From Heterodontus francisci (Eukaryota): a stretch of DNA of 64,000 nucleotides. The stretch covers positions 1,178,001 to 1,242,000 of the forward strand of contig NW_027140453.1 of NCBI RefSeq assembly GCF_036365525.1. Direction: 5' to 3'. Each line of letters starts with the position of its first letter. The first letter of the stretch is position 1. A program made the translations under genes and the position numbers. The notes beneath the pieces were generated by a model. It did no database searches and was not told the origin of the DNA. It saw nothing but the letters and a program-made list of their open reading frames with translations. Shown one piece after another: positions 1 through 64,000 of this stretch.

Positions 1-630
1 TCACCTCTGTGCAGTGAAGGTTAGAGGGAGATTAACAAGACTGGTATCAGGGATGAAGGACTTCAGTTACTGTGGAGAGACTGGAGAAGCTGGGGTTTTT
101 TCTCCTTGGAGCAGAGAAGGTTAATGGTAGATATGATACAGATATTGAAGATCATAGAGGATTTTGATAGATAATTGATAACACATCACATCATCTACTG
201 GCCAATATATAGAAAATCTATGCAAAGATGGTCAGTCATTCCATCACTGCAGTATGTTTAATTAGTTCATACAAACTGTAATCACCTAAAGATATAGTTA
301 GATAGTTACAGAGACAGACAGATAGGTAACCAGGTAGAGAGATAGATAGATAGAGAGACAGAGAGATAGATAACCAGGTAGAGAGATAGATAGAAAGAGA
401 GACAGACAGGCAGGGAGACAGATAGTTATGAACTCTGACATTCAATCTACTGCTGCCGCCTGCTGGTGGAAGAGGAGCACTGACATTCAATCCACTGCTG
501 CCCACTGATGGTGGAAAATGAGCAGTGAGACTCAAACCACTGATGCCACCTGCCGGTGGATGATGAGCACTGAAATCCTGTTCATCTGCTGCAGGTTGAT
601 GCAGCTGCAGATCCGCTTTCTCAAACACAG

Positions 631-1391: not shown

Positions 1392-2722
1392 GATTTCTTC
1401 ATTCGATACCAACTCGATGTGTGAACGTGTGGAGTTTTCAACAACACACTTGCAGGCGGTTTCTATATTATATCCAATTAAATACCCAGCATCCGGTTGT
1501 CATTGTTATTGGCAGTCACTTACTGCGACACTCTGCTCCACCCCATTACATTGTATAGCAATGTTGTAGAATGATACAACACAGGAGGATAGGGGGAGAT
1601 TGAATAGAGGTGTTCACATTTCAGAAAGGGATTTGATAGAGTAGAATTCAGGGAAGCAACCCTCTATACCCAGAGAGTGTGTACATCCCTTATTGCCCCT
1701 GAGAAGGTGGTGGTGAACCATCTTCGGAATTACCTTCTGGGCCATATCAGAGGGCAGTTAGTCGTCAACCACATTGCTGTGGGTCTGCAGTCACATATAG
1801 GCCAGACCGGGTAAGAATGGCAGATTTCCTTCCCTGAAGGTCATCAATGAATACGTTAGGTTTTTACGACATTCCATGTTCAGAATTGCTCTTACTTTCC
1901 ATTACAGATTTTATTTATTTACTTAATTAAATTTAAATTCAATTTCTGCCCTGGTGAGAATTGAACTCAAGTCTGGAGATCATTAGTCAAGGCCTCTGGA
2001 TTACTAGTCCAGTAACATAACTGCTCTGCTCCCGTACCTCCTTGCTGAATGGAGGTTAAAGGGTTAAATTGTTCACTGGTCTGAACTGCGAGTTTCTTTG
2101 AAGAACACATCAAATGTGACTCGAGTCTAAGATGAAAGTGGGTAAAGAGTTTTCAGCAGCTTCTGAACTGGAGAGGGGTCTCACTTTGAACACTGTGAAA
2201 CAGCGCTCAGATGGTTAATGGTTCTGCGCTGAGTTAGTTTCTGTGCATGAGGGGGTTGTTCGCCTCTGTGTAGTGACGTTTAGAGGGAGATTAACCAGAC
2301 TGGTATCAGGGATGAGGGACTTCAGTTACTGTGGAGAGACTGGAGAAGCTGGGGGTTTCTGCCCTTAGAGCAGAGAAGGTTAATTAGATGTGATACAGAT
2401 ATTGAAGATCATAGAGGATTTTGATAGATAATTGATGATAAACCACATCTTCTACTGGTCAAGATATAGAAAATCTATGAAAAGATGGTCATTCATTACA
2501 TTACTGCAGTCTGTTTAATTAGTTCAAACAAACTGTAATTACCTAAAGATAGTTAGATAGCTGGAGAGACAGAGAGATAGATAACCAGGTAGAGAGATAG
2601 ATAGATAGAGAGACAGAGAGATAAACAATCAGGTGGACAGATAGATATGAACAATAAGCTTCAATCTACTGCTGCCCCCTGCCAGTTGAAGATGAGCACT
2701 GAACTCCCGTTCATCCGCTGCA

Positions 2723-2761: not shown

Positions 2762-3529
2762 CGATACTACAAGCGCAGAAATAGACAGCGGTGTGAGATG
2801 GAGCGGCGTCTCTCAGTGCCAAAGTAAACAGTGTATCGCTGGCTCTGTCTGCCTTAAATGACTCGGACGTGTAATTGGTGACAGACCCTGTTCCAACAGA
2901 ATAGAACAGAGCTTCCAGTGCCCTGTCTGGTTGTTGTCTGTACCAGTACATTGCAGGATAGCCAGTATTCTTCAGCATGCATCTGAGTGTGGTCGACTCT
3001 CCTGCGGAAATCGATAGGATCGAGGGCGACTGTTCCACATAGGAGGAGAGTATTCCTGTGGGACGGAACATCGATTAGATTATTATTTCAGTCAATAATG
3101 GATTGGAGCAGGGGCTGCATTACAAGAAAGAGAGGGCTTACATTAATATATCGCCGTTCAGGACCTCAGGGCATCAGAAACGGCTTTGCAACCAATGTAG
3201 TTACTCCCTCATTACTGCCTCTGCGAAAGTGCGGCACTCCCTCAGTACTGCCTCTGCAACAGTGCAGCACTCCCTCAGTACTGCCTCTGCGACGTGCAGC
3301 ACACCCTCAGTACTGCCTCTGTGACAGTCCAGCACTCCCACAGCCCTGACACCTGGGGTATTACTTTTGACTTTGAGCTCAAGTGTTCTGGAGTGAGACT
3401 CTGACACAGCAGTGTGATGGAACAGGATCACCACTGACATTACAATACATTATTCGACACAGTTTCGGACTTTGACTTACGTGGGAAGAGTGCAGCCATC
3501 AAGATTAGACTGAGAACTTCATGCAACAT
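2762..3529 (-). CDS. TRBV: V2: TRBV-like segment, family 1, apparently functional. Leader 3529-3481, V exon 3055-2762
   Basis: Leader MLHEVLSLILMAALFP, GT-AG phase-1 intron, YVEQSP...RCMLKNTGYPAMYWYRQ...YFCACSI, followed by an intact RSS. Confidence 0.93.
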
Positions 3530-4903
3530 GATTTCTTCATTCGATACTAACTCGATGTGTGAACGTGTGGAGTTTTCAACAACACACTTGCAGGCGGTTT
3601 CTATATTGTATCCAATTAAATACCCAGCATCCGGTTGTCATTGTGATTGGCAGTCACTTACTGCACATTCTGCTCCACCCCATTACTTTACATAGCAATG
3701 TTGTTGAATGATACAACACAGGAGGATAGGGGGAGATTGAATAGAGGTGTTCACATTTCAGAAAGGGATTTGATAGAGTAGAATTCAGTGAAGCAACCCT
3801 CTATACCCAGAGAGTGTGCCCATCCCTTATTGCCCCTGAGATGGTGATGGTGAATCATCTTCGGGAATACCTGCTGGGCCATATCAGAGGGCAGTTAGTA
3901 GTCAACCACATTGCTGTGGGTCTGCAGTCACATATAGGCCAGACCGGGTAAGAATGGCAGATTTCCTTCCCTGAAGGTCTTCAATGAATACGTTGGGTTT
4001 TTAAGACACTCCATGTTCAGGATTACTCATACTTTCCATGACAAATTTTTATTTATTTAATTAATTGAATTTAAATTGCATTTCTGCCCCGGTGGGAATT
4101 GAACTCAAGTCTGGGGATCATTAGTCCAGGCCTCTGGATTACTAGCCCAGTAACATTACTGCCCTGCTGCCGAACCTCCGTGGTGAATGGGAGTTAAATG
4201 GTTAAATTGTTCACTGGTCTGAACTGCTAGTTTCTTTGAAGAACACATTAAATGTGACTCGAGTCTGAGGTGAAAGTGGGTAAAGAGTTTTCAGCAGCTT
4301 CTGAACTCGCTGTCAGGAGGCAGGTGTCCCAGAGATGAAGTTATCTGGAGAGGGGTCTCACTTTGAACAGTGTGAAATAGCGCTCAGATCGTTAATGGTT
4401 CTGCGCTGAGTTAGTTCCTGTGCATTGGGGGGTTGTTCGCCTCTGTTTTGTGAAGGTTAGAGGGAGATTAACCAGACTGGTATCAGGGATGAGGGACTTC
4501 AGTTACTGTGGAGAGACTGGAGAAGCTGGGGGTTTCTGCCCTTAGAGCAGAGAAGGGTAATGGTAGATGTGATACAGATATTGAAGATCATAGAGGATTT
4601 TGATAGATAATTGATGACAAATCACATCTGCTACTGGTCTTTATATAGAAAATCGATGAAAAGATGGTCATTCATTACATTACTGCAGTATGTTTAATTA
4701 GTTCATACAAACTGTAATTACCTAAAGATAGAGTTAGATAGATAGAGAGACAGAGAGATAGATAACCAGGTAAAGAGATAGATAGATAGAGAGACAGAGA
4801 GATAAACAATCAGGTGGACAGATAGATATGAACAATAAGCTTCAATCTACTGCTGCCCCCTGCCAGTTGAATATGAGCACTGAACTCCCGTTCATCCGCT
4901 GCA

Positions 4904-4942: not shown

Positions 4943-5777
4943 TGATACTACAAGTGCAGAAATAGACAGCGGTGTGAGATGGCGCGGCGTCTCTCAGTGC
5001 CAAAGTAAACAGTGTATTGCTGGCTCTGTCTGCCTTAAATGACTCGGACGTGTAATTGGTGACAGACCCTGTTCCAGCAGAATAGAACAGAGCTTCCAGT
5101 GCCCTGTCTGGTTGTTGTCTGTACCAGTACATTGTAAGATAGGCAGTATTCTTCAGCGTGCATCTGAGTGTTGTCGACTCTCCTGCGGAAAGCGATAGGA
5201 TAGAGGGTGTCTGTTCCACATAGGAGGAGAGTATTCCTGTGGGACGGAACATCGATTAGATTATTATTTCAGTCAATAATGGATTGGAGCAGGGGCTGCA
5301 TTACAAGAAAGAGAGGGCTTACATTAATATATCGCCGTTCAGGACCTCAGGGCATCAGAAACGGCCTTGCAACCAATGTAGTTACTCCCTCAGTACTGCC
5401 TCTGCGACAGTGCGGCACTCCCTCAGTACTGCCTCTGCAACAGTGCAGCACTCCCTCAGTACTGCCTCTGTGACAGTGCTGCACTCCCTCAGTGCTGCCT
5501 CTGCGACAGTGCAGCACTCCCTCAGTACTGCCTCTGCGACAGTGCAGCACACCCGCAGTACTGCCTCTGCGATAGTCCAGCACTCCCTCAGCCCTGACAC
5601 CTGGGGTGTTAGTTTTGACTTTGAGCTCAAGTGTTCTGGAGTGAGACTCTGACACAGCAGTGTTATGGAACAGAATCACCGCTGACTTTACAATACATTA
5701 TTCGACACAGTTTCTGACTTTGACTTACGTGGGAAGAATGCAGCCATCAAGATTAGACTGAGAACTTCATGCAACAT
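4943..5777 (-). CDS. TRBV: V3: TRBV-like segment, family 1, apparently functional. Leader 5777-5729, V exon 5236-4943
   Basis: Intact leader, splice sites and V ORF ending YFCTCSI. Confidence 0.93.
5385..5590. repeat. 33-bp intronic minisatellite in family-1 leader introns (also ~1065-1205 and ~3205-3345; ~1 copy at ~47850-47890)
   Basis: Unit CTCCCTCAGTACTGCCTCTGCGACAGTGCAGCA; copy number differs among paralogs. Confidence 0.9.
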
Positions 5778-7703: not shown

Positions 7704-8714
7704 TCATGATCTCAGTGAAGGTCGGAATGTTTTCGAGGTGATGAATGAACTCCTTGTGTTCCCAGGTCACTGTTGAAGTGTCTTCCAGACTCTGATGTTT
7801 ATAATGGTACAACAGCGCACTCTACTGTCCCTTTGGAGAAAGAAAACACAGTGACATCAAACCACACCTTCAATATCCATTCATCAATCCATCCATCTCT
7901 CTCTATCTTTCTCCCTCTCTCTATCTCTCTCTCTACCTCTCTTTATCTCTCTCTCTCTGTCTCTGTCTCTCTCTCCCTCTCTCTATCCGTGTCTCTCTTT
8001 CTCCCTCTCTCTCTATCTATCTCTCTATCTATCAATCTCTCTATGTCTCTCTCTATCTATATATCTATCCATCTCTATTTATTTCTCTCTCTCTCTCTAT
8101 CCGTCTCTCTTTCTCTCTCTTTATCTCTCTCTCTCTATCTATCTCTCAATGCCTCTCTATCTATTTATGTNNNNNNNNNNNNNNNNNNNNNNNNNNNNNN
8201 NNNNNNNNNNNNNNNNNNNNNNNNNNNNNNNNNNNNNNNNNNNNNNNNNNNNNNNNNNNNNNNNNNNNNNNNNNNNNNNNNNNNNNNNNNNNNNNNNNNN
8301 NNNNNNNNNNNNNNNNNNNNNNNNNNNNNNNNNNNNNNNNNNNNNNNNNNNNNNNNNNNNNNNNNNNNNNNNNNNNNNNNNNNNNTCTCTGTCTCTCTCG
8401 CTGTTGTTTCTGAACTTCACTTCACATCTTAAAATCTTTAAGAAGCTCTCTGAGACCGCTGAAGGTTTACCCTTCAGTCTTCTCTTTTCTGGAGCAAAGA
8501 TAACCCGATATTCAAACTATCATGTTCGCTTTAAACTCTGTGTTCCTGTAAAGTCGAATTCGCAATTCCCCGGTGCTTCGAAATCTAACCTCTCCCTTTC
8601 TCTTTAAATCTGCACTGTCTTCTTGTGAAGAACATGTTCCCAATGATGAAATCACCCAACAGGACGCAGCACCGCCTGGTTTTATCTGAAACAGGTGTTT
8701 CCTGCTGCCTTTGG

Positions 8715-19009: not shown

Positions 19010-19970
19010 GAGTAGATAGAGAGAAACTATTACCGCTGGTTTGGGAATCTAGGACTAAGAGGCCAAGACTAAAAATTAGAGCCAGACCTTTCAGGAGTGA
19101 AATTAGGACACATGTTGACACACAATGGGTGGAGAGGTTTGAACTCTCTTCTGCTAACGGAAATTGATGCTGATTCAATTGTTAATTTGAAATCGGAGAT
19201 GGATAGGTTTTTGTGATCCAAAATAAATATTAAGGGATGTGGGGCAAAGGCGGGAATATGGAGTTAGATCACAGATCAGCCATGGTCTCATTGAATGGTG
19301 GTACAGAATTGAGGGCCTGAATGGCCTGTTCCTGTTCCTGCCTTTGTCTTAGCAGTTTCTGCTGGCAGTGAATTCTGTATTTTGGGTAAAGAATTCTCCT
19401 CAACTCCCTATCGGATTTCAGTTTTTCTCAGCTTTTATTCTCTGTTTTATTCCTATCCTCTTCGTCCCCTAGTCTTTGTACAATCAGCTAATGGGAACAG
19501 TTTTTCTTTGTCTACTTTATCTAAACCTCTCTTCATTTTGTACACTTCTGTCAAATCTCCCCTCAATTTCCTTTGCTCCAAGGAGAACAACCCCAGCTTC
19601 ACCAAACTAACCATGCAGTTAAACTCTCTCATCCCTGGAACCATTCCAGTAAATCTCCTCTGTACCCTCTCAAGGACCCTACATCCTTCCGAAAGTGTGG
19701 TGACCAGAACCGAGCTCAGTACTCAAGTTGGGGCCGAACCAGAACCTCATATATGTTGAGCATAACCTCCCTGCTTTTGTACTTTATACCTCTATTCATG
19801 AATCCCAAGATCCCATAAGCTTCGTGAACCTCTTTCTCCATATGTCCTGCCACCTTCAAAGATCTATGCACAATAACCCCAGGTCCCTCTGTCCTTGAAC
19901 ACTCTTTAGGCCTGTGTCATTAAGTCTGTATTTCCTCTCTGTCTCCCTTCTGCCAAAATGTATCTCCTGA
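19010..19970. mobile_element. CR1-like LINE 3' fragments in both orientations
   Basis: LGLFSLEQRKLRGDLTEVYKMKRGLDKVD translation typical of the CR1 ORF2 C-terminus. Confidence 0.8.
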
Positions 19971-20869
19971 CAACAATGCAGTTCACTGTTAACTGCCTCT
20001 GAAATGGGCTAGCAAGTCATTCAGTTCAGGGCAATTCGGCATAGGTAATGAATGCTGACCTTGTCAGTGATGTGCACATCCCTGAATGTGTGTATTTTAT
20101 ATAAAATTATTCCTTCTCCATTTTTCTTTCACTGTTTTCTGACTTTGCTTCCCCTCTTTACTTCCTTCAGATCATCTGTTTTGGTATCTCACAAGTGTTG
20201 CTCAAACCATTCACTATGAACGAGCAGACTTGGGAAAATCCAGTTGTCTATTTTGTGTGGAATGGTTATGATTTGAATCTGTTTCAGAGTTCGTGGAATT
20301 GACTATTAGGTCGATTGGTCAAGTCACTGCTGCATTGCTCGCTCAGTCTTCACAGAAGCAAGTGGGACTCAGGCTGCGGTGGAGCTCCATCCCCATCTCG
20401 TGGTTGTAATGTGTAACTACAGGCACCTGAGAATTGCACAGTGCAATTGATGAAATAGGCATTCTGAAGACATGCTTTGAAATTGCTCCGTCTTCCCATT
20501 TTTTATACATTGCTTCGGCTGGTGATGCTGGTGACATCGAATTAGATAGAAGATGCAGAACAAATTCCGATGGGACCATGTTCCAGACTAGGCTGGAGCA
20601 GATGGCAGTGTAGTTGGCATGTCACTGTGCGAGCAAACCAGAGGCTGGGGTGAATCTCCAGGGGACATGCGTTCGAATCCCATGAGGTCAGATGGTGGAA
20701 TTTAAATTCAATTAATGAATAAATACAATTATTTCATTGGAAAATCTGCAATTGAATGCTAGTCTCAGTTAAGGCGCCCTGACACCCAGCTGGCTCACTC
20801 ATGTCTTTTAGGGAAGGAAATCCGCCGTCCTTACCTGGTCTGGTCTACATGTGACTTGAGACCCACAGA

Positions 20870-32579: not shown

Positions 32580-33455
32580 TGTTGGTGTTGTTCTCCTGCT
32601 GAAGATGTTGTTGAATTTGTTGGTGTCTTCTTCCGACTGAAGTTGTTGTTGAACTTCTTGGTGCCTGCTTCTGACTGAAGTTGTTGTTGAATTTGTTGGT
32701 GCCTTCTTCTGACTGAAGTTGTTGTTGAATTTGTTGGTGCTTTCTTCCGACTGAAGTTGTTGTTGGATTTTTGGTGTTTTTCTCTCCTGCTGAAGTTTTT
32801 GTTGGATTTGTTGGGTTTTGTTTTACTGCAGCTGAAATTGTTGTTGCATTTTTTGGTGTTTTTCTCCTGCTGAAGTTATTGTTGAATTTGTTGGTGTTTT
32901 TCTACTGCTGAAGTTGTTGTTGAATTTGTTGGTGCTTATCACCTGCTGACTGAAGTTGTTGTTGAATTTGTTGGTGTTTTTCCCTGCTGAAGTTGTTGTT
33001 GAATTGTGGGGCTTTTTAACTGTTGCTGAAGTTGTTGTTGTATTCGTTGATTTTTTTCCTGCTGAAGTTGTTGTTGAATCTGTTGGAGTTCTTTACTGCC
33101 TGCTGACTTTGTTGTTGAATTTTTTGGTGTTTTTCTCCTGCTGAAGTTGTTGTTGTATTCATTGATTTTTTTTTTCCTGCTGAAGTTGTTGTTGAATTTG
33201 TTGGTGTTCTTTAATCCCTGCTGACTTTGTTGTTGAATGTTTTGGTGTTTTTCTCCTGCTGAAGTTGTTGTTGTATATGTTGAATGTTTTTTTCCCGCTA
33301 ATGTTGTTGAATTTGTGGTGTTTTTCTCCTGCTGAAGTTGTTGTTGTAATCGTTGATTTTTTTTTTCCTGCTGAAGTTGTTGAATTTGTTTGTGTTTTTC
33401 ACCTGCTGAAGTTGTTGTTGAATTTGTTGATATTTTTCTTGAATTTGTTGCTGTT
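32580..33455. repeat. ~36-38-bp minisatellite (CTGCTGAAGTTGTTGTTGAATTTGTTGGTGTTTT)
   Basis: More than 20 degenerate units; related arrays at ~40580-40645 (opposite strand), 41025-41310 and 42430-42660. Confidence 0.9.
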
Positions 33456-34655: not shown

Positions 34656-34694
34656 TGTTTTTGTCTCACTCTGCCGCAGGGTTGTATCGCTGTG
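34656..34694 (-). promoter_or_regulatory. 23-RSS of V13
   Basis: CACAGCG, 23-bp spacer, ACAAAAACA. Confidence 0.9.
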
Positions 34695-40920: not shown

Positions 40921-41319
40921 CTTGTCGACTCAAGCAAGTGATTCAGGTTTGCACAACGCCTCCCTCCCTGATGGGGAACCCACGCCCCTCTCTCTACCAT
41001 TGGCTGCCAGTAGTTGCTGTTGCAAATGTTGGTATCATTCTGCTGCTGAGGTTGTTGTTGTATTTGCTGGTGTTTTCCTCCGGCTGAGGTTGTTGAATTT
41101 GTTGGTGTTTGAATCTCCTGCTGATCTGTTGTTGAATTTGTTGGCCTTGTTCTCCTGCTGAGGTAGTTGTGTTGGTTGGTGTTTTCCCTGCTGAGGTTTT
41201 TGTTGTACTTGTTGTTTTCTTCCCTGCTTAAATTGTTGTTCAATTCGGTTTTTGCATGCTGAGGTTGTTGTTGTATTTTTGGTGTTTTTCTTTCCCTGCT
41301 GAGGTTATTTTCTCTTTTT

Positions 41320-42420: not shown

Positions 42421-42667
42421 CGTACAGATTCAACATGTTGTTGCATCTGCTGCTGCTTTTCACCTGCTGAAGTTGTCTTTGTTGCTTTTCTCCTCCTGAC
42501 GCACTTCTTGAATTCTGTTGGTGTTTTTTTCTCCTCCTGACATTGGTTGGTGAGCTTTTTTTTGCCAACGTTGCTTCTGAACTTGTTGGTGTTTTCCCTC
42601 GCTGAGGCTGTTGTTGAATTTGTTGATGCTTTTCGTGCTGAGGTTTTTGTTGTATTTGTTGTATTGC

Positions 42668-43165
42668 CCGGAGGAGGTTACAGAGATAGGGAGGGTTGTA
42701 GGGCTGGAGGAGGTTACAGTGATAGGGAGTATTGTAGGGGCTGGAGGAAGTTACAGAGAGAGGGAGGGTTGCAGGTCTGGAGGAGGTTACAGCAATAGGG
42801 AGGGTTGTAGGGCTGGGAAGGTTACAGAGATAGGGAGGGTTGTTGGGCTGGAGAATGTTACAGATATAGGGAAGATTGTAGGGGCTGGAGGAGGTAACAG
42901 AGATAGGGAGGGTTGTCGGGGCTGGACGAAGTTACAGAAATAAGGAAGTTTGTTGGGGGCTGGAGGAGGTTACACCGATAGGGAGCGTTGTCGGGTCAGG
43001 AGGAGGTTACTGAAATAGGGAAGCTTGTCGGGGGCTGGAGGGGGTTACGGAGATAGGGAGGGTTGCATTACCTTAAGCAGGATACAGACATAGGGAGGAT
43101 TGGAGGAGCTGGAGGAGGTTACAGAGATAGGGAGGGTTGTAGGGGCTGGAGGAGGTTACATGAAC
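42668..43165. repeat. ~37-bp minisatellite GGAGGAGGTTACAGAGATAGGGAGGGTTGTAGGGGCT
   Basis: About 13 degenerate tandem units. Confidence 0.9.
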
Positions 43166-45812
43166 AGGGATAATTGTCACTGTTCATCGAGTGTACTCAG
43201 TGTTAACCCCAGTATCATTCTGGTGAATCTCAGCTGTATCTGGTCCAAGGCAAACAGCTGCTTGTTGAGGAAGGTGCCCAGACTGTGTGCAATATTCCAA
43301 ATGTAGTCTAACCAGAGCCTCCTACAACTGTGGCATTACCTCCAAACCCTTTGTATTGTAGCTTCTTCCATTAATCACACGTTCCATAATGCATGACTGG
43401 ATGCACGCATACACCACACACACACTCCCAACTCTCTCTCTCGCCCACCCCCTCTCTCTCCTCAGTTTGTTTGACTATGTTGTTAGTTGTGCATCTTTGT
43501 CCTTCAGCTGATCGTATCTGTGCCTCTGATATGAAGAGTCTATTGTTCACAGTCCTTGACAAACACAACAGCTTCCTGCTTTGTAAAAGTTGACATTTTC
43601 CTAGTTGACACACGGCACAACATTCAAATCTGTTAGTCCCAGGGAATGCAAATATCAAAGCCGGCTCAGAAGTGTTAATGAGTCCATTGTGGGACTGAAT
43701 GAATATCTGACAACCTGGCATGGACACAGGGGCATTGACAGAATCGGCAATCCAGTGAGAATGGAGACTGTGGAAACTATCAGGGACTAGGCATTGGACA
43801 TGGGCTGGTTGGAACTGAGATGCACATTCAGACGCCCCTTTTCACAGGCAGTGTAACATTGAGTAACAATGTGCTTCAAGGTGATTGTGATTACTGAGGG
43901 GACAGTGACATTGTGAATCTGTCACAGGAATATTATCTGGAGCCCTGGACTGACTGCACTGCCCAATGTGCTAATGATCTAACAGAGAAATGTGGGGACA
44001 GACGAATCCTACCCCATCAGAAACAAATCCTAGAATAGTACAACAGAGGGAGGCCATTCGGCCCATCGAGGGTTTGTCATCTCTTTCGAAAATCAACCCA
44101 GTTAATCCAACTCCGCTCTCTTTCACCATTTCCCTCAATTAATTCCCCTTCAAGTATTGAGCCAATTCCCTTTTTGAATAATACCATTGAATTTCCACCA
44201 CCCTATCAGCATTGCCCTCCAAATCCAAACCACTCATGATATTAAAAAACATTTATCCTCATGTCACCTCTGGTACCTTTGCCCATCACATTAAAGCTGT
44301 GCCCTCTGGTGATCTATCGAATCTCCCCTTAACCTTCTCTGCTCTAAGGAGAACGTCCCTTTCTAGCCCAGTCTTTTTACTTGACTGAATTTCCTCACCA
44401 ACTGAACCATCCGAGAAAATCTCTTCTGCAACCTCTCCAAAGCCTGCAGGTCTTTCCGAAAGTGTGGTGCCCTGAATTGGGCACAATATTCCAACAGGGG
44501 CCGACCTGGTGGTTTATACAGGTTTGGCATGACTCCCGGAGTTTTGTACTCGACCTCTCTATTTACAAAGCCCAGACTGTAATATGATTTATTAATCGCT
44601 TTCTCAACCTACCCTGTCACCTTTAAATATTCCTGCACAAGCACCCCCAGGTCTCTCTGTTCTTGCACCACTTCACAAATTGTATTGTTTCATCTCTCCT
44701 CATTCTCGCAGTCAAAATCAAACATATCAAAGACTAATCCCACCCATATCTGGGACAAATTACCTGCTTATTATTATTCAGTCAGTCATGGACAATGGTC
44801 AAAACTAACCTTTTTGACCAAGCGTTTGGTCATCAGCCTTAATCTCAACTTCTGTGGGTTTGGGGTCAGATTTTGTTTTATAATGTACCCTATGTAGCAC
44901 CTTTGGGACTTTTTAATCCTCACCTTCTCCCTCACCCAGTCCGTCACTCTCTCTCTCTCTCTCTCCTCCTCACCTCTAAGACAAGTATATCCATCCTTCA
45001 GTACTGAGACCAGGACTGTACACAGTACTCCAGGTGTGGGCTCACCAAACCCTGTCCCATTACAGCAAGACTTCCTCACTCTTGTACTCTAACCCCTTTG
45101 CAATAAAGGCCAACACTCCATTTGCTGTACCTGTGTGTTAACTTTCTGTGCTTTGTGTACAAGGACACCCAAATCCCTCTGAACACCAACATTTCATCGT
45201 TTCTCACCATTTGAAAAATGTTCTGTGTTTCTATTCTTCCTGCCAAAGTGAAGAACCTCCTCACCCGAATCTCTCTCTCTCACTCCCTCAACTTGTTTCT
45301 GTCTCTCTCCCTCAGCCCATCTCTCTCTCTCTAACTCTCCCTCTCTCTCGATCTTTCTCCCCCTCACCCTGTCTCTCTCTCTNNNNNNNNNNNNNNNNNN
45401 NNNNNNNNNNNNNNNNNNNNNNNNNNNNNNNNNNNNNNNNNNNNNNNNNNNNNNNNNNNNNNNNNNNNNNNNNNNNNNNNNNNNNNNNNNNNNNNNNNNN
45501 NNNNNNNNNNNNNNNNNNGTGGATCTGATGGGGTAGTTTGGGAGAAATTATTTCGGTAGGTTGGGGACTCTGGGACGAGTGAGCATAGTCTAAAAATTCG
45601 AGGCAGACTTTTCAGGAGTGAAGTTAGGAAACACCTCTACACACTAAAGGTGGTGTTAGTTTGGAACTGTCTTCTGCAAACGCACGTTGATGTTAAATCA
45701 ATTGTTCATTTTTAAATCTGAGATTCACCTTCTCGGATGCCTTTTGGAAATTGAAATATTCTGTTGTCACTCTCTGTCCCTTAGTTATACTGTTGTTTCT
45801 GTGTTTGTGTGG

Positions 45813-45853
<41 letters not shown>

Positions 45854-47664
45854 TGTGTGTGTGTGTGTCTATGCTTGTTTCTCTCTCCTCTCTCAGAATC
45901 TCAGTAAAACTCCACATACATCAGTTTGCCATTTTAAGTCGGCTACTTTCGGTGACACCACATCTGCAGAGGGTGCACTTCCTTATGCAGGCTGGTAACA
46001 AACCCGTATCCGCAGCTGGCTCCAATGTTCCCGTGAAGATTTAGTTGTTGTTCGTAGCCATTTTTCTTTCGTGAACAGTCCCTTTAAACATTTGAAGAAT
46101 CTTTACAGACGTGTGTAATTTATCAGGGAACAGGACCTGCGTGGTACCTTCCAGGCTGCTGCACACAGCTTTACGGGAACACTGACCGACACTCTCCATC
46201 CCAATCTCTTCCTCTTTCTCTCTGGTACTCTCTCCCCATTGCTATCCTTCCCTCTCTCTCTTATTCTCTCTCTATATCTATCCCTGTCTTTCTCACTGTT
46301 ATTCTCTCCATCTGGATGGAGGAGAATGAGAGGCATATACAGAGGCAGCTTTACTCTGTATCTAACCCCACACTGTACCTGCCCTGTGAGTGTTTGATAG
46401 ATCAGAGAAGACAGAGATTTACTCTGTAGATAACTTGGCTTGGCAGCATTTGATGGGACCGTGTAGACAGAGCTTTACTCTGTATCCCTGGAATTAAGAA
46501 GGGTAAGGGGTGAGTTGATCAAAGTTTATAAGATAATCCTGGAAGCTGATGGGGTAGAGAGAGAGAAAATCTTCTCACTGGTTGGGGGAACCTGGGACGA
46601 GGGGCACAGTCTAAAAATCGAAAATTAATCTAAAATTCTTTCAGGCTGAAATCTATAAACATTTCTACACACAAAGTGTGGTAGAATTTTGGAATTGTCT
46701 TCCACAAATAACCCCTCCCTATCTCTGCAATCTCCTCCAGCTCCACAATCCTCCAATATCTGTGATCCGCTAATTCTGGCCTCTTGAACATCCCCAATTT
46801 GAATCGTTCCACCATTGGTGGCCGGGCCTTCAAACTGCCAAGGCCCGAACTCTGGAATTCCTTTCCAAAACATCTCCGTCTCAGTAACTCTCTTCCCTCT
46901 TTGAAGACGCTCCCTAAATCCAAGCTCTTTGACCAGGATTTTGGTCGTCTTGCCTAATAACTCCTTAAGTGACTCGGTGCTGAATTTTAATTTTTAAATT
47001 GATTGGAGTGAGGTGTGTGTCACTGGCCAGGCCAGCATTTATTGTCCATCACTAATTTCCCTTGAGAAGGTGGTGGTGAGCCATGTTCTTGAACCACTGC
47101 AGTCCATGTGGGGTAGGTAGACCCACAGTGCTGTTCGGAAGGGAGTTCCAGGATTGTGACCCAGTGCAATATCGTTCCAAGTCAGGATGGTGTGTGACTT
47201 TAGTTGTTGTGTGTGGCCATCTTTATCAGTGCACAGTCCCTTTAAATTTGTGATATTTTTTAACGCAGTTCGATGTAAAAGTTCTACAATCTGCCTGTCT
47301 CTGCCCATCTCTCCCTCCCTCTTTCTGCCCATCTCTCCCTCCCTCTCTCTCTCTGCCTCTCAATAAAGGATGGGCACACTGTCTGGGTATAGAGGGGTGT
47401 TTCCCTGAATTCTACTCTATCAAATCCCTTTCTGAAATGTGAACACCTCTATTCAATCTCCCCCTATCCTCCTGTGTTGTATCATTCTACGACATTGCTA
47501 TGTAAAGTAATGGGGTGGAGCAGAGTGTCGCAGTAAGTGACTGCCAATCACAATGACAACCGGATGCTGGGTATTTAATTGGATACAATATAGAAACCGC
47601 CTGCAAGTGTGTTGTTGAAAACTCCACACGTTCACACATCGAGTTAGTATCGAATGAAGAAATC

Positions 47665-48333
47665 ATGTTGCATGAAGTTCTCAGTCTAATCTTGATGCCT
47701 GCCCTGTTCCCACGTAAGTCAATGTCAGAAACTGTGTAGAATGATGTATTGTAATGTCAGCGGTGATTCTGTCCGGAACACTCCTGTGTCTGAGTCTCAC
47801 TCCAGAACACTTGAGCTCAAAGTCAAGGCTGACAACCCAGATGTCAGGACTGAGGGAGTGCTGCACTGTCGCAGAGGCAGCACTGAGGGAGTAACTACAT
47901 TGGTTGCAAAGCCCTTTCTGATGCCCTGAGGTCCTGAACGGCGCTATATTAATGTAAGCCCTCCCATTCTTGTAATGCAGCCCCTGCTCCAATCCATTAT
48001 TGACTGAAATAATAATTTAATCGATGTTCCATTCCACAGGAATACTCGCCTCATATGTGGAACAGACACCCTCGATCCTATCGATTGCTGCAGGAGAGTC
48101 GACAACACTCAGATGCACGCTGACCAATACTGCATATTACTATATGTACTGGTGCAGACAACAACCAGACAGGGCACTGGAAGTTCTGTTCTATTCTGCT
48201 GGAACAGGGTCTGTCACTAATTACACGTCCGAGTCATTTAAGGCAGTCAGAGCCAGCGATACACTGTTTACTTTGGCACTGAGAGACGCCGCTCCATCTC
48301 ACACCGCTGTCTATTTCTGCGCTTGTAGTATCG
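47665..48333 (+). CDS. TRBV: V14: family-1 TRBV in inverted orientation, ORF intact (WCRQ for WYRQ). Leader 47665-47713, V exon 48040-48333
   Basis: Leader MLHEVLSLILMPALFP, GT-AG intron, V ORF to YFCACSI. Confidence 0.92.
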
Positions 48334-48372
48334 CACAGTGCTTGAGAAAGCGGATCCGCAGCTGCAAAAACC
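48334..48372 (+). promoter_or_regulatory. 23-RSS of V14
   Basis: CACAGTG, 23-bp spacer, GCAAAAACC. Confidence 0.95.
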
Positions 48373-48392
48373 TGTAGTGGATGAACGGGAGT

Positions 48393-48847
48393 TCAGTGCT
48401 CATCATCCACCGGCAGGGGGCAGCAGTAGATTGGAACTCAGTGCTCATCATTCACCAGCAGGGGGCAGCAGTAGATTGAATCTCAGTGCTCATCTTCCAC
48501 CGGCAGGTGGCGGTAGGACATTGAATTTCAGTGCTCATCTTCCACCGGGAGGGGGCAGCAGTAGATTGAATCTCAGTGCTCATCTTCCACCGGGAGGGGG
48601 CAGCAGTAGATTGAGTCTCAGTGCTCATCTTCCACCGGCAGGGGGCAGCAGTAGATTGAGTCTCATTGCTCATCTTCCACCGGCAGGGGGCAGCAGTAGA
48701 TTGAGTCTCAGTGCTCATCTTCCACCGGCAGGGGGCAGCAGTAGATTGAGTCTCATTGCTCATCTTCCACCAGCAGGGGGCAGCAGTAGATTGAATCTCA
48801 CTGCTCATCATCCACCGGCAAGGGGCGGTAGTAGACTGACTGCTCAT
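48393..48847 (+). repeat. 10 x 45-bp tandem repeat, each unit with a CTCF-consensus core
   Basis: Units start at 48393, 48438 ... 48798; core CC(A/G)GCAGGGGGCAGCA. Confidence 0.9.
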
Positions 48848-51003
48848 TTACTGGAACCAGATCAATGAATCATCTTGGATAACAGCACAGAAGGAGACCA
48901 TTCGGCCCATCTCCCCCGTACTGGCTTATTTGAAAGAACTGTCCAGTTCTTCCCCCCTTCTACTTCCCCATCGCCGTGCACATTGATTCCATTCACGTGT
49001 ACAATCCATTGCCTTTTGAACGTTCTTGTTCAAACTGCTTCCAACACCCTTTCAGACAGTGCTCGCCACATCATAACAACTCGCTGCTTAAATAAATCAT
49101 CACATCTCCCCCCTCCCCCCACTAATTCATCTGCCAGTTACATTTAATCAATGTCTCCTGGTTGCCTTCTACCTATAGAAGCAGTTTCTATTCATTTAAT
49201 ATTTATAAAAATTCTTGAATGGGATGTGAGCATCGCTGACCAGTCCAGCATCTGCTATCCATCCCAAATTGCCCTTGGGAAGGTGGTGGTGAGCTGCCTT
49301 CTTGAACCACTGCAGTCCATGTGGGGTAGGTCCACCCACAGTCCTGTTAGGAAGGGAGTTCCAGGATTTTGACCCAGCGACAGTGAAGGAACGGCGATAT
49401 AGTTCCAAGTCAGGATGGCATGTGGCTTGAAGGGGAACCTGCAGGTGGTGATGTTCCCATGCATCTGCTGTCCTTGTCCTTCTAGGTGGCAGAGGTCGCG
49501 GGTTTGGAAGGTGTTGTCGAAGGAGCCTTTGGGAGTTGCTGCAGTGCATTTTGTATATAGTCCACAGTGCTACCACAGTGCGTTTGTGGTGGAGGGAGTG
49601 AATGTTTGTGGATAGGGTGCCAATCAAGCGGGCTGTTTTGTCCTGGATAGTGTCGACCTTCTTCAGTGTTGTTGGAGCTGCAATCGAGTGGAGAGTATTC
49701 CAACACACTCCTGACTTGTACCTTATAGATGGTGGACAGGCTTTGGGGAGTCAGGAGGTGAGGTACTCAAGACTCAACGTGCGCTGCCTGAGTGGATAGA
49801 ACTCTCCTCTCTGAGTTAGAAGGACCCACTCCACAGACTGGAGACAATGAAAAGGCTGACACTTTAGTGCCAAAAAACTGCAGGTAAGTCAAAACAAATC
49901 CACCGAGCAAAAATGTCGTACCGAAATGCATGTTTCATACTATTTTCCCTGATTAAGCAGAATTAACGCACACAATTTTGAATGCAGCACAAACGCCACA
50001 AATTGATGCTAAACCATTTATAAAAAGTCTGGTTTGGCCGCAACTGGTGTAGCGTGTCCACTTCTGTACATGACATTGTAGGAAGGATGGAGAGGGTGCA
50101 AAGGAGATTTAAGAGTAGGTGACCGGGCGTGAGGGATTTCAGCGATGTGGAGATGTGGGAGAAGCTGTTCATTGGAACAGACAATTTTACAAAAAGTCCC
50201 AGAGCCCAATCCAGAAGGTTAGGGGAGCGATGATGGAACCCGCCACTGCTTATCCAATCCACACACTTTGGAATGTTTCCCATTTCATCCATGATCTTCC
50301 CACTTCATGTAAAGTGCATCTATGGAATAGTTAAGTTGTCACCCCCCACTCTTGGTCTAACCTTTAACACTTCCATTGTTACCGAGTCCTGATAGATATT
50401 TAAGAAAGATAGTGAACATTTACTCTTGTAAAATCTCAGCTTTTCTGAAATGACCCTCTCAGCAATGCACACATCCCATCACTGAATACATTCAGATACA
50501 ATTGGAAGAGAACAAGCTTGATAATGATGGTGGAGTGAGAATCTCTTTATGGTGATGAGGCTGCTGAGGGTGAGGCTGACACAGATAATGGCGGTCGGGA
50601 GGAGGGTGGTAATGTGGCCTCAGATGGTAATGATGAGTGTGAGGATGGTGTCAGGATGAATGTGGTTATGATCAGGGGAGTACTGAAGGTATTGATGATC
50701 CCAACACACCCGCCCATTTAATCACCTCTCCACCACAGAAGATAGTTTACATCACATTTACTCCCTTCCTTTCTGCAACTTTCAAAGACATGAAACAGAA
50801 CTGCAGGCCCAGAAACCGATGAGTTGGGGGCCAAACATTGGGTCATCCCCAGAAATGACGAGTCCTCAGGGAGCCCATGAACAAAGTAAGAAAGCTTGGC
50901 TCCGCCTAGGAAAATGTTGAAGATGATGGAGACGGAAGCTGTAAATTCTAGTCAGTGCCCAAAACTTTGAGATACTCTACAATAAAAGTGCTCAGTCGTT
51001 TCA

Positions 51004-51652: not shown

Positions 51653-53476
51653 CACAGTGACTCAGAAAGGCACCGGAGTTCAGCAAAAACTCTAAACATT
51701 GACAGAGCTCACTTGTGGGAGATAGACCTGTCTATCTGGGGTGTCATTCTATCACTCTGACTATCTGTCAGTTTCTATGTCTACTGTTGAATGAACTGGC
51801 TCTTTGACAGAGTTGTCTAACTAGTTCCCATTCACTGACTAGTTCTTCATTGCACTAATAAATCTCCCCTACATCTACTTCTCCAATTGACATCTGGAAG
51901 TTACGATTGGATGGTCTTCCACCGTCCTTTCAGTCAATGCCCTCCACATGATAACAATTCACTGAGGAGAAAGATTCCACTCATCTCCCACTCTGGTTCC
52001 TTTCCCAATTACCTTCAATTCTTGGTCCCTGGTTTATCGACACTCCTGACTGTAGATACGACCCTCTGGATACAGTTTCTCCATCAAGACACTTCTGACC
52101 ACGTCTTTCAAATCTCCCCTACCCTCATTACTCCAATGGACACAAGTCCATACAAATAGGAAATGGTTGATCTTGGAACCTTTAATCATGTCTCTGATGA
52201 TTCATACAGTGCAAAGGCGAGACACCTCTCCAGATCCGTCTCTGACTGGAACACCTGCCTCCAGACGGCGGCTTCAGCATCTGTTCAAAACTGTTAACAC
52301 ACTTGTCTCTCAGTCTTTCGGTATCTTTTGAAGAATTTTCACATTGACTGCAGTTCAGTGTGGTGAAGAACTTAACCCTTTAACTCCCGTTTAGCGCAAG
52401 GGGGGGAAATGAAACTGTCTTGACCCTGAAACAAGGCAGCAGGTTGACGGCTCTTATTGGATCATAGAATCATGAGGGACACATCCAGGGTATTCAGTCC
52501 ATCGATACTGGCCTCGCTGTTCGAAAGAGCGACCTCCTCCCATCTCTCTTCATCTTACCCTATCAACAGATTCTTCAATTCCTTTCTCACTCATGTATTT
52601 ATTCAGCTCCCCCCTAAACTGCATCGTCTCTATTCGACCTCAACCCATTCCATTGGTCGCTAATTCCACATTCTCACCGCTCCCTGGATTAAAGAACCTC
52701 CTCCTGAATTCCCAATTGGATTTATTAAGGACTACCTTACATTTATGATCCCTGGTTTTCATCTTCCCTGTCCAATTACTGCCACTCCCTGTTCTTTCTG
52801 ATTAACCCTGCACTTGATCTTGCAGCTTGTCTGTCTCCTTCCCACCATTACAACAGTTACTGCATTTCAAAATACATTTGACTGGTTGAGGCTGGAGTGA
52901 AGCAGAGAGCTGTCGGGCCGAATGGAGCCGATCTGTGCATTAGCTTCCATCGACTTCTGTGCCACAAGCGCCAACACGAGTCGAGTAGAAGATTATAACT
53001 AATGACTGAAACAGGTTCAGGGTCTGACACTGAAACGCCTGATGAATCGGTGCTTGCAGTTACACCTGGAGCCACTAGGTGCCAGTGTTACTCCACTGTC
53101 GCCGCTGCCGAGAACATGCTCAGACAGAGTGAGCTTTACCCACAGCAGCTCCACAGGTCAACTTGGCTGCTTCTGAAATGTTTCACTTCTCAACTATTTC
53201 ACACAAAATATTCCGGCAATGGAAGATGAGGGAGATGAGTTTTTAATCTGATCGTTTACGGGTCATTAAGTATCAATTATGTCAGTGCAACCTTGAAATA
53301 TTTGCACCCAGATGCCAGTTTGTAGATTTCCAGGTTCTATTTTACAATTACATTGTCCCAGGTGTTTGTAGGAAACTAGGAGAGTGGCTGAATGTCCATC
53401 CTGACTTTCGCACAACTCCCACATCTATCGTGCCAAGTGTAAAGTAACATTTTCCCCCCATGCTCCCTGTTTCCAG

Positions 53477-62673: not shown

Positions 62674-62855
62674 GTGGAATAACGGGAGATCTGGTGCTCA
62701 CTTCATGTGATCAAGTGAGAGACAGTTTTCAGAACAGAAGGCTTCACACTGACATGTTGTGATAGCCTCACTGCGCTGGTGGAGGGGCTGTATTAATCAG
62801 GTCTGTTCATTGAGGAGGTGAAACTCAGTTTGTTGAGGTTTTCAGAGCGGGTTTG
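62674..62855 (+). pseudogene. Decayed family-3 V relic, copy 3, 3'-truncated
   Basis: Same sequence as 53477 onward, ending at GAGCGGGTTTG where a SINE-like block begins. Confidence 0.7.
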
Positions 62856-64000
62856 GACGGATGATTTCCTTCCCGAAAAGACATGAGTGAGCCAGCTGGG
62901 TGTCAGGACACCTTAACTGAGACTAGTTTTCAATTGCAGATTTTCTGATGAAATAATTGCATTTATTCATTAATTGAATTTAAATTCCACCATCTGACCT
63001 GGTGGGATTCTAACGCATGTCCCCTGGAGATTCACCCCCGCCTCTGGTATACCAGCTCAGTGACATGACAACTACACCACCATCTGCCCCAGGCTAGTCT
63101 GGAACGTGGGGCCATCGGGCCGAATAGCCTGAATCTGTGCTGCAATTTCTATCTAATTCGATGTCACTAGCGTCACCAGCTGAAGCAATGGATAAAAAAT
63201 GGGAAGACGGAGCAATTTCAAAGCATGTCTTCATAATGCCTATTTTATCAATTGCACTTTGCAAATCTCAGGTGCCTGTAGTTACACATTACAGCCACGA
63301 GATGGGGATGGAGCTCCACCGCAGCCTGAGTCCCACTTGCTTCTGGAGAGACTGAGCGAGCAATGCAGCAGTGACTTGACCCATCGACCTAATAGTCAAT
63401 TCCACTAACTCTGAAACAGATTAAAATCATAACCATTCCACACAAAATAGACAACTGGATTTCCCCAAGTCTGCTCGTTCATAGTGACTGGTTTGACCAA
63501 CACTTGTGATATACTAAAACAGATAATCTGAAGGAAGTAAAGAGGGGAAGCAAAGTCAGAAAACAGTGAAAGAAAAATGGAGAAGGAGGAATTTTATATA
63601 AAGAAGCACATATTCAGGGATGTGCACATCACTGACAAGGTCAGAATTCATTACCTATGCCGAATTGCCCTGAACTGAATGACTTGCTAGCCCATCTCAG
63701 AGGCAGTTAACAGTGAACTACATTGCTATCAGGTGATTCATTTTGGCAGAAGGGAGACAGAGAGGAAATACAGACTTAATGACACAGGCCTGAAGAGTGT
63801 TCAAGGACAGAGGGACCTGGGGGTTAATGTGCATAGATCTTTGAAGGTGGCAGGACATATGGAGAGAGAGGTTCACAAAGCTTATGGGATCTCGAGATTT
63901 ATAAATAGAGGTGTAGAGTTCAAAAGCAGAGAGATTGAGCGAAACATTTATAAGGCTCTTGTTCAGCCCCAACTTGAGTATTGAGTCCAGTTCTGGTCAC
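62855..64000 (-). repeat. Inverted, diverged copy of ~19700-20830
   Basis: Matching ORF-track translations (SPAEAMxKKWEDGAISKHVF) on opposite strands and collinear flanking repeats. Confidence 0.9.

Follow-up and report, generated by a model that had tools for sequence, protein, structure and literature searches.

Ten tandem CTCF-like motifs directly behind the 23-RSS of a V-beta-like gene of the shark Heterodontus francisci

In a 64-kb window of the Heterodontus francisci genome (the whole stretch of DNA analysed, 64,000 nucleotides), the V gene V14 is followed by ten 45-bp units in tandem, each of which carries a CTCF-like 19-mer in the sense of the V gene (Table 1). The array is a real feature and lies far outside chance expectation. 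That it binds CTCF and has chromatin-loop barrier activity is a reading of its sequence that we consider evenly balanced.

TRF called the repeat at 48393-48839 with a period of 45, 9.9 copies, 91% matches and 0 indels, i.e. a minisatellite in the sense of head-to-tail units of 10-100 bp, and a partial 11th unit closes the array, ending at ~48855. The array starts 20 nt past the V14 nonamer and the first 19-mer lies 34 nt past it, with all ten cores in register on the + strand, i.e. in V sense. The sequence-only reading had described ten 45-bp units starting 20 bp after the V14 RSS, each with CC(A/G)GCAGGGGGCAGCA or a close variant, and this description stands: the TRF call begins at that distance from the RSS at 48334-48372, and the motif is exact in 6/10 units, with one mismatch in 2/10 and three mismatches in the remaining 2/10. 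Elsewhere in the 64-kb window the core scan found no unit core at four or fewer mismatches beyond those behind V14, V1, V2 and V3. Homology with the flanks of V1-V3 stops at the partial last unit of the V14 array; past the unit homology V1-V3 have a TAGA-type microsatellite and V14 a fragment of a high-copy interspersed repeat, over which (48856-48918) the summed contig depth, a rough measure of repeat copy number, is ~8e4-1.5e5 as against hundreds in the array.

Table 1. Positions in the window of V14, the 45-bp array, its paralogous units and the neighbouring CTCF-like motifs
Feature	Position	Strand	Basis
V14 leader exon, coding part (ATG to GT donor at 47714)	47665..47713	+	sequence reading
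V14 V exon, open, V-set, V-beta-like	48040..48333	+	Pfam V-set E 4.7e-16; AG acceptor 48038-48039
V14 23-RSS, canonical (CACAGTG, 23 nt, GCAAAAACC)	48334..48372	+	RSS scan
V14 cassette (promoter, leader, intron, V, RSS, first unit)	47361..48448	+	inverted repeats
Ten 45-bp units, CTCF-like 19-mer in each at 48407+45n	48393..48842	+	TRF, core scan, PWM, unit distance matrix
Very high-copy interspersed repeat fragment abutting the array	48856..48918	.	contig depth, paralogue alignment
Three units and partial fourth behind V1 (cores 450-559)	428..575	-	TRF; 15.4, 11.4, 17.5 bits
Single degraded unit behind V2	2669..2688	-	10.6 bits; 34 nt from nonamer
Single degraded unit behind V3	4850..4869	-	10.6 bits; 34 nt from nonamer
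Strong CTCF-like motif between the arms, 17.5 bits	36140..36158	-	PWM scan
Nearest strong opposite-strand CTCF-like motif, 15.7 bits	44297..44315	-	PWM scan
Two co-oriented CTCF-like motifs, 13.1 and 14.0 bits	52255..53087	+	PWM scan

The V exons of the cluster are V-set domains by Pfam. The single-domain PDB matches of the V14 V exon were mostly TCR beta chains, and a public protein search with V14 gave one match, a catshark hypothetical protein of 61% identity without a chain name. V14 is V-beta-like, and we treat it as a putative TCR beta-type V gene. Its cassette is a copy, in inverted orientation, of those of V2 and V3 at 92-96% identity (inverted repeats I1-I5, I8 and I14). The cassette and the array are together bracketed by copies of a high-copy interspersed repeat at 47010-47164 and 49223-49377, which are 85% identical, in the same orientation and 2213 bp apart. 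A search of 46000-50500 against Rfam gave no known RNA family.

V14 reads WCRQ (TGC, 48153-48155) where its paralogues V1-V3 read WYRQ. All of the DNA contigs, and nearly all of the RNA-like contig depth, have TAC and not TGC at 48154, so that the assembly alone attests the Cys codon of V14. The contigs of run X5 are RNA-like, i.e. their depth is high in the leader and V exon and low in the intron and array; as their depth at 48154 is nearly all TAC, they support expression of the V family and not of V14 itself. The V14-specific letters (TGC at 48154, and those at 48341, 48375 and 48378) are absent from the X1 DNA contigs, which is not proof of their absence because contigs drop rare variants.

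We scored the units with a reconstruction of the JASPAR MA0139.1 counts (column sums 908-913), which is not the released file. With this matrix, whose maximum possible score is 27.8 bits, units 1 to 10 of the array scored 19.6, 23.2, 19.5, 16.5, 16.5, 19.6, 19.6, 19.6, 22.8 and 12.6 bits, so that 9/10 units reached at least 16.5 bits (16.5-23.2). The match to the CTCF consensus that the sequence-only reading had claimed was therefore upheld by the PWM scan in nine of the ten units, within the limits of the reconstructed matrix. Against a base-composition background a score of 16 bits corresponds to p ~6e-7 and scores of at least 16.5 bits to p of about 4e-7 or lower, and the number of such matches expected by chance over all of the repeat consensus units in the window is, by our estimate, roughly 5e-4. 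The exception, unit 10, has lost an invariant G, and the two highest scores (23.2 and 22.8 bits) belong to the two CCAG units, which are without the core CpG.

The consensus core of the shark units, CCGGCAGGGGGCAGCAG, is identical at 15/17 positions, including the G at the third core position, to the core of chicken HS4 FII, CCGCTAGGGGGCAGCAG, as printed for the HS4 FII oligo in PMC3014928. The HS4 FII site bound CTCF in EMSA, and mutation of the core abolishes binding. The beta-globin site and the shark core are both of the CCG variant, whose CpG falls at core position 2; unlike the V14 array, the beta-globin site stands alone within a CpG-rich insulator, and an upstream module is not clearly common to the two. 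A two-part CTCF site with an upstream ZF9-11 module was considered for the shark units and not supported, as comparison by eye with the IL3 site gave only CAGT-N-C near the right distance. From their letters, the V14 units are most likely able to bind CTCF when unmethylated.

The same unit occurs behind three paralogues of V14. The core scan and the paralogue alignment agree with the earlier count of three units behind V1 and one each behind V2 and V3, giving a series of 1, 1, 3 and 10 copies for V2, V3, V1 and V14. The units behind V1, V2 and V3 are in V sense too, i.e. on the - strand, and the gap from nonamer to 19-mer is fixed at 34 nt in V14, V2 and V3. In both V2 and V3, CpG decay has turned CCGG into CTGG and so removed an invariant C, which lowers the score of their units to 10.6 bits. 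These observations support the unit being part of the V cassette, with a copy number that differs among the paralogues. The V1 heptamer (590-640, - strand) has a 2-bp deletion, CACAGTG being aligned to C--TGTG, and its nonamer is GCATCAACC; to judge from this, V1 probably cannot recombine with its broken heptamer, yet it keeps three CTCF-like units.

The distances between units indicate how the array grew. Units 4 to 9 differ from each other at 0-4 positions, units 6 and 8 being identical, whereas the edge units 3 and 10 differ from the others at 7-9 positions, and units 1 and 2 do so at 3-9. Near-identical central units with diverged units at the edges point to internal expansion in place, by slippage or unequal exchange, and the array is most likely a multiplication by slippage of a CTCF site linked to the V gene. 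A transposon origin, in which the unit would be part of a dispersed high-copy element of the SINE B2 type, was rejected. By the rough measure of summed contig depth the array, at 2e2-8e2, is like the V exon, as against 1e5-5e6 for the flanking repeats, and in the window the core occurs only behind family-A V genes.

Tandem repetition is common in this DNA, with 112 TRF tandem-repeat rows in the window. The family-A V genes have a 33-bp minisatellite in the leader intron (1070-1206, 3203-3343, 5384-5591 and 47808-47908), which varies from ~2 to 6.3 copies and whose unit belongs to a very high-copy repeat common to three species labels. With a window so rich in minisatellites and a copy-variable 33-bp array in the intron of the cassette itself, the expansion behind V14 needs no selection.

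The V genes of the window form two arms of opposite orientation. The RSS scan found 11 23-RSSs on the - strand, from 2.7 to 34.7 kb, and four on the + strand, at 48.3, 51.7, 56.2 and 60.8 kb. The last on the - strand lies at 34656-34694 and V14 is the first V on the + strand, i.e. the first V of the inverted arm, as had been proposed from the sequence. The arms may represent separate sub-loci that diverge in orientation and each rearrange by deletional joining; V14 would then be the outermost V in the right-hand sub-locus. They share more than the V14 cassette, since 19700-20842 and 62843-64000 are inverted homologues over ~1.1 kb at 86-96% identity, away from the V exons.

The orientation of CTCF-like motifs flips together with that of the V genes. 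All matches of at least 13 bits up to 44.3 kb are on the - strand and all those from 48.4 kb onward on the + strand, each co-oriented with its V arm. Ten of these motifs lie outside the 45-bp arrays, where local first-order Markov simulations predict 1.1 +/- 0.85; after paralogy the ten amount to about five independent sites. The motifs at 44297 (-) and 48407 (+) form a divergent pair 4.1 kb apart. Divergent CTCF sites are enriched at domain borders (PMC7422557), and insulation of the two arms by the array, if it occurs, would fit this divergent layout. The motifs listed at 52255..53087 follow the V15 RSS at 0.6 and 1.4 kb and recur behind V16 and V17.

V families B and C have CTCF-like motifs of their own, in V sense and 0.4-1.4 kb behind their RSSs, at 7813, 10637, 13388 and 16299 (-) and at 52255, 53069, 56831, 57645, 61424 and 62234 (+). 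Between the arms there are also minisatellites of other kinds: a 38-bp T/G-rich one of 22 copies with a 118/233-bp higher-order period at 32580-33439, smaller arrays related to it 8-10 kb away (41013-41219 and 42578-42661), and a separate 37-bp array of 13 copies at 42670-43160.

The main rival explanation is a neutral minisatellite, in which the CTCF-like site is incidental or a relic and the array is methylated or heterochromatic in lymphocytes, unoccupied and without effect on recombination. We regard this as quite possible, though somewhat short of an even chance. It draws on the absence of any extra constraint on the motif: mismatches per column in the V14 array are 0.58 inside the 19-mer and 0.69 outside, and over all 15 units 1.16 and 1.19, so that the 15 units of this genome show no excess conservation of the 19-mer over the rest of the unit, in a test whose power is low because the sample is small and the array young. 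The youth and near-identity of the central units, the many minisatellites of the window, including the copy-variable one in the intron of the cassette, and the decay of the motif behind V2, V3 and in part V1 all fit neutrality as well. So does the CpG content. A CpG at core position 2 is present in 8/10 V14 units, and methylation at this position significantly cuts CTCF binding (PMC6222495). The core CpG has been changed by transitions in 6/15 units, which together with a CpG observed/expected ratio of 0.29 in the array suggests germline methylation; as the ratio for the window is 0.37, there is no footprint of hypomethylation, and no CpG island or hypomethylation signature was found in the array by this measure. 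On the other side, neutrality leaves unaccounted for a motif that is far above chance and close to HS4 FII, a proven CTCF site, and that scores highest (23.2 and 22.8 bits) in just the two CCAG units that have no core CpG to methylate. It must also contend with a position relative to the RSS and an orientation that reproduce the mouse arrangement, with co-oriented downstream motifs in the other V families of the window, and with the retention of the layout of RSS followed by tandem units under a second species label. The contigs of that second label (run X6) join V exon to RSS to unit 1, and spacer to units 1-2, at 90-95% identity; they may be paralogues, and the differences among those listed are in the linker with none in the core of unit 1, a weak hint of constraint on the core. 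Taken together, the lack of extra motif conservation, the decay behind V2 and V3 and the CpG depletion give no sign of selection for a tuned anchor; the sequence-only reading had seen in the array a copy-number-variable loop anchor that could tune V usage or insulate the two arms.

G-rich minisatellite cores resemble recombination-prone (Chi-like) sequences, and the core could in principle work by a route other than CTCF, i.e. as a recombination-prone minisatellite core or through E-proteins or another zinc-finger protein. We consider this improbable: the CCACCAGC units do carry a Chi-like octamer, GCTGGTGG, on the reverse strand, and CAGGTG, a candidate E-protein site, is present in unit 3 and in unit 1 of V1, but most units have no such sub-motif, while a CTCF match of 15-19 positions runs through almost every unit. 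More remote still is an artefact, with the length of the array or the V14 cassette mis-assembled. Among the contigs examined none has the V14-specific letters and none spans the array; however, contigs drop rare variants by construction, they cover the passage from array to flank (48712-48908) and, under the second species label, that from RSS to units, and the unit variants are in the ordered pattern expected of a real array.

Several known systems share features with the V14 array. In mouse, most proximal VH families have CTCF at less than 100 bp from the RSS, in Tcrb just two V genes have a CTCF site close to the RSS, and in Igh and Tcrb alike every V-region site is directed toward D-J-C (PMC5859386). 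RSS-adjacent V sites promote the use of their own V and impede further RAG scanning (bioRxiv 2020.01.01.891473). The V14 array resembles the mouse VH81X-CBE type in lying directly downstream of a V 23-RSS; the distance of 34 nt in V14, V2 and V3 is within the ~100 bp downstream of the V RSS seen for mouse proximal VH genes, and the motif, being in V sense, points downstream of the RSS. The parallel to the RSS-adjacent elements of mouse Igh that had been drawn from the sequence was borne out both in RSS adjacency and in an orientation that points downstream as in the proximal VH genes. Mouse proximal VH genes differ in having one site per V, with a known function, where V14 has ten predicted sites in tandem at a shark gene of TCR beta type.

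Like the V14 array, the ten Igh 3' CBEs, IGCR1 and Cer/Sis consist of several co-oriented sites at the edge of an antigen-receptor locus, and their clustered sites jointly form a strong barrier. Each of those sites has a sequence of its own, and together they extend over kilobases at the D-J-C end and face the V genes, whereas the V14 array is a 45-bp minisatellite. The third likeness is to DXZ4/Dxz4 and Firre, where tandem units each have a CTCF site (predicted, in the case of V14) and where, according to two reports (PMC3491370, bioRxiv 165340), the orientation of the array controls contacts. They are X-chromosome macrosatellites of kilobase units with epigenetically switched binding, in contrast to the 45-bp, RSS-adjacent unit of V14. 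In general, barrier or insulator strength increases with the number of tandem CTCF sites. Sharks possess CTCF with the cohesin-interacting YDF motif (PMC7471279), and loop-extrusion signatures have been reported in a skate. We found no paper in the literature on CTCF sites in shark antigen-receptor loci.

In the explanation that we prefer, a V gene cassette of V-beta type in this shark has, at 34 nt from its 23-RSS and in V sense, a site of CTCF type. Behind V14 this site and its 45-bp surround were amplified locally to ten copies, through replication slippage or unequal exchange. We infer that several of the units may be occupied by CTCF in lymphocytes, with the N-terminal side of the protein lying downstream, toward the other V segments of the arm. 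An array occupied in this way would stall cohesin extruding from the recombination centre, and the stalled cohesin would hold the V14 RSS at the base of the loop, in the manner of the VH81X site in mouse. As no V of its arm lies further out than V14, the array would also block extrusion into the V arm of opposite orientation. Occupancy would depend on methylation through the core-position-2 CpG that 8/10 units have. The expansion itself was probably neutral, and any barrier function would therefore be a by-product of it and not a tuned device.

A more general proposal, which we put forward as speculative and think rather unlikely to hold in full, is that the TCR beta-type V cassettes of sharks have a hard-wired, RSS-adjacent CTCF site that readily expands, and whose copy number sets barrier strength and through it V usage and the insulation of V blocks. 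If this were true, unit copy number would be a heritable, fast-evolving rheostat of the repertoire. Should the array prove to be unbound, it would be a caution that arrays of strong motifs may arise and persist neutrally. Distinctive of the V14 array are its position at an orientation switch and the decay series among its paralogues, and its copy-variable tandem form, with 1, 3 and 10 sites, would provide a natural allelic series in which barrier strength can be set against site number. If the more general proposal were true, the guidance of V(D)J recombination by loop extrusion and CTCF sites linked to V genes would predate the split between cartilaginous and bony vertebrates, and the geometry of mouse Igh in a shark TCR locus would date this layer of control to the base of the jawed vertebrates.
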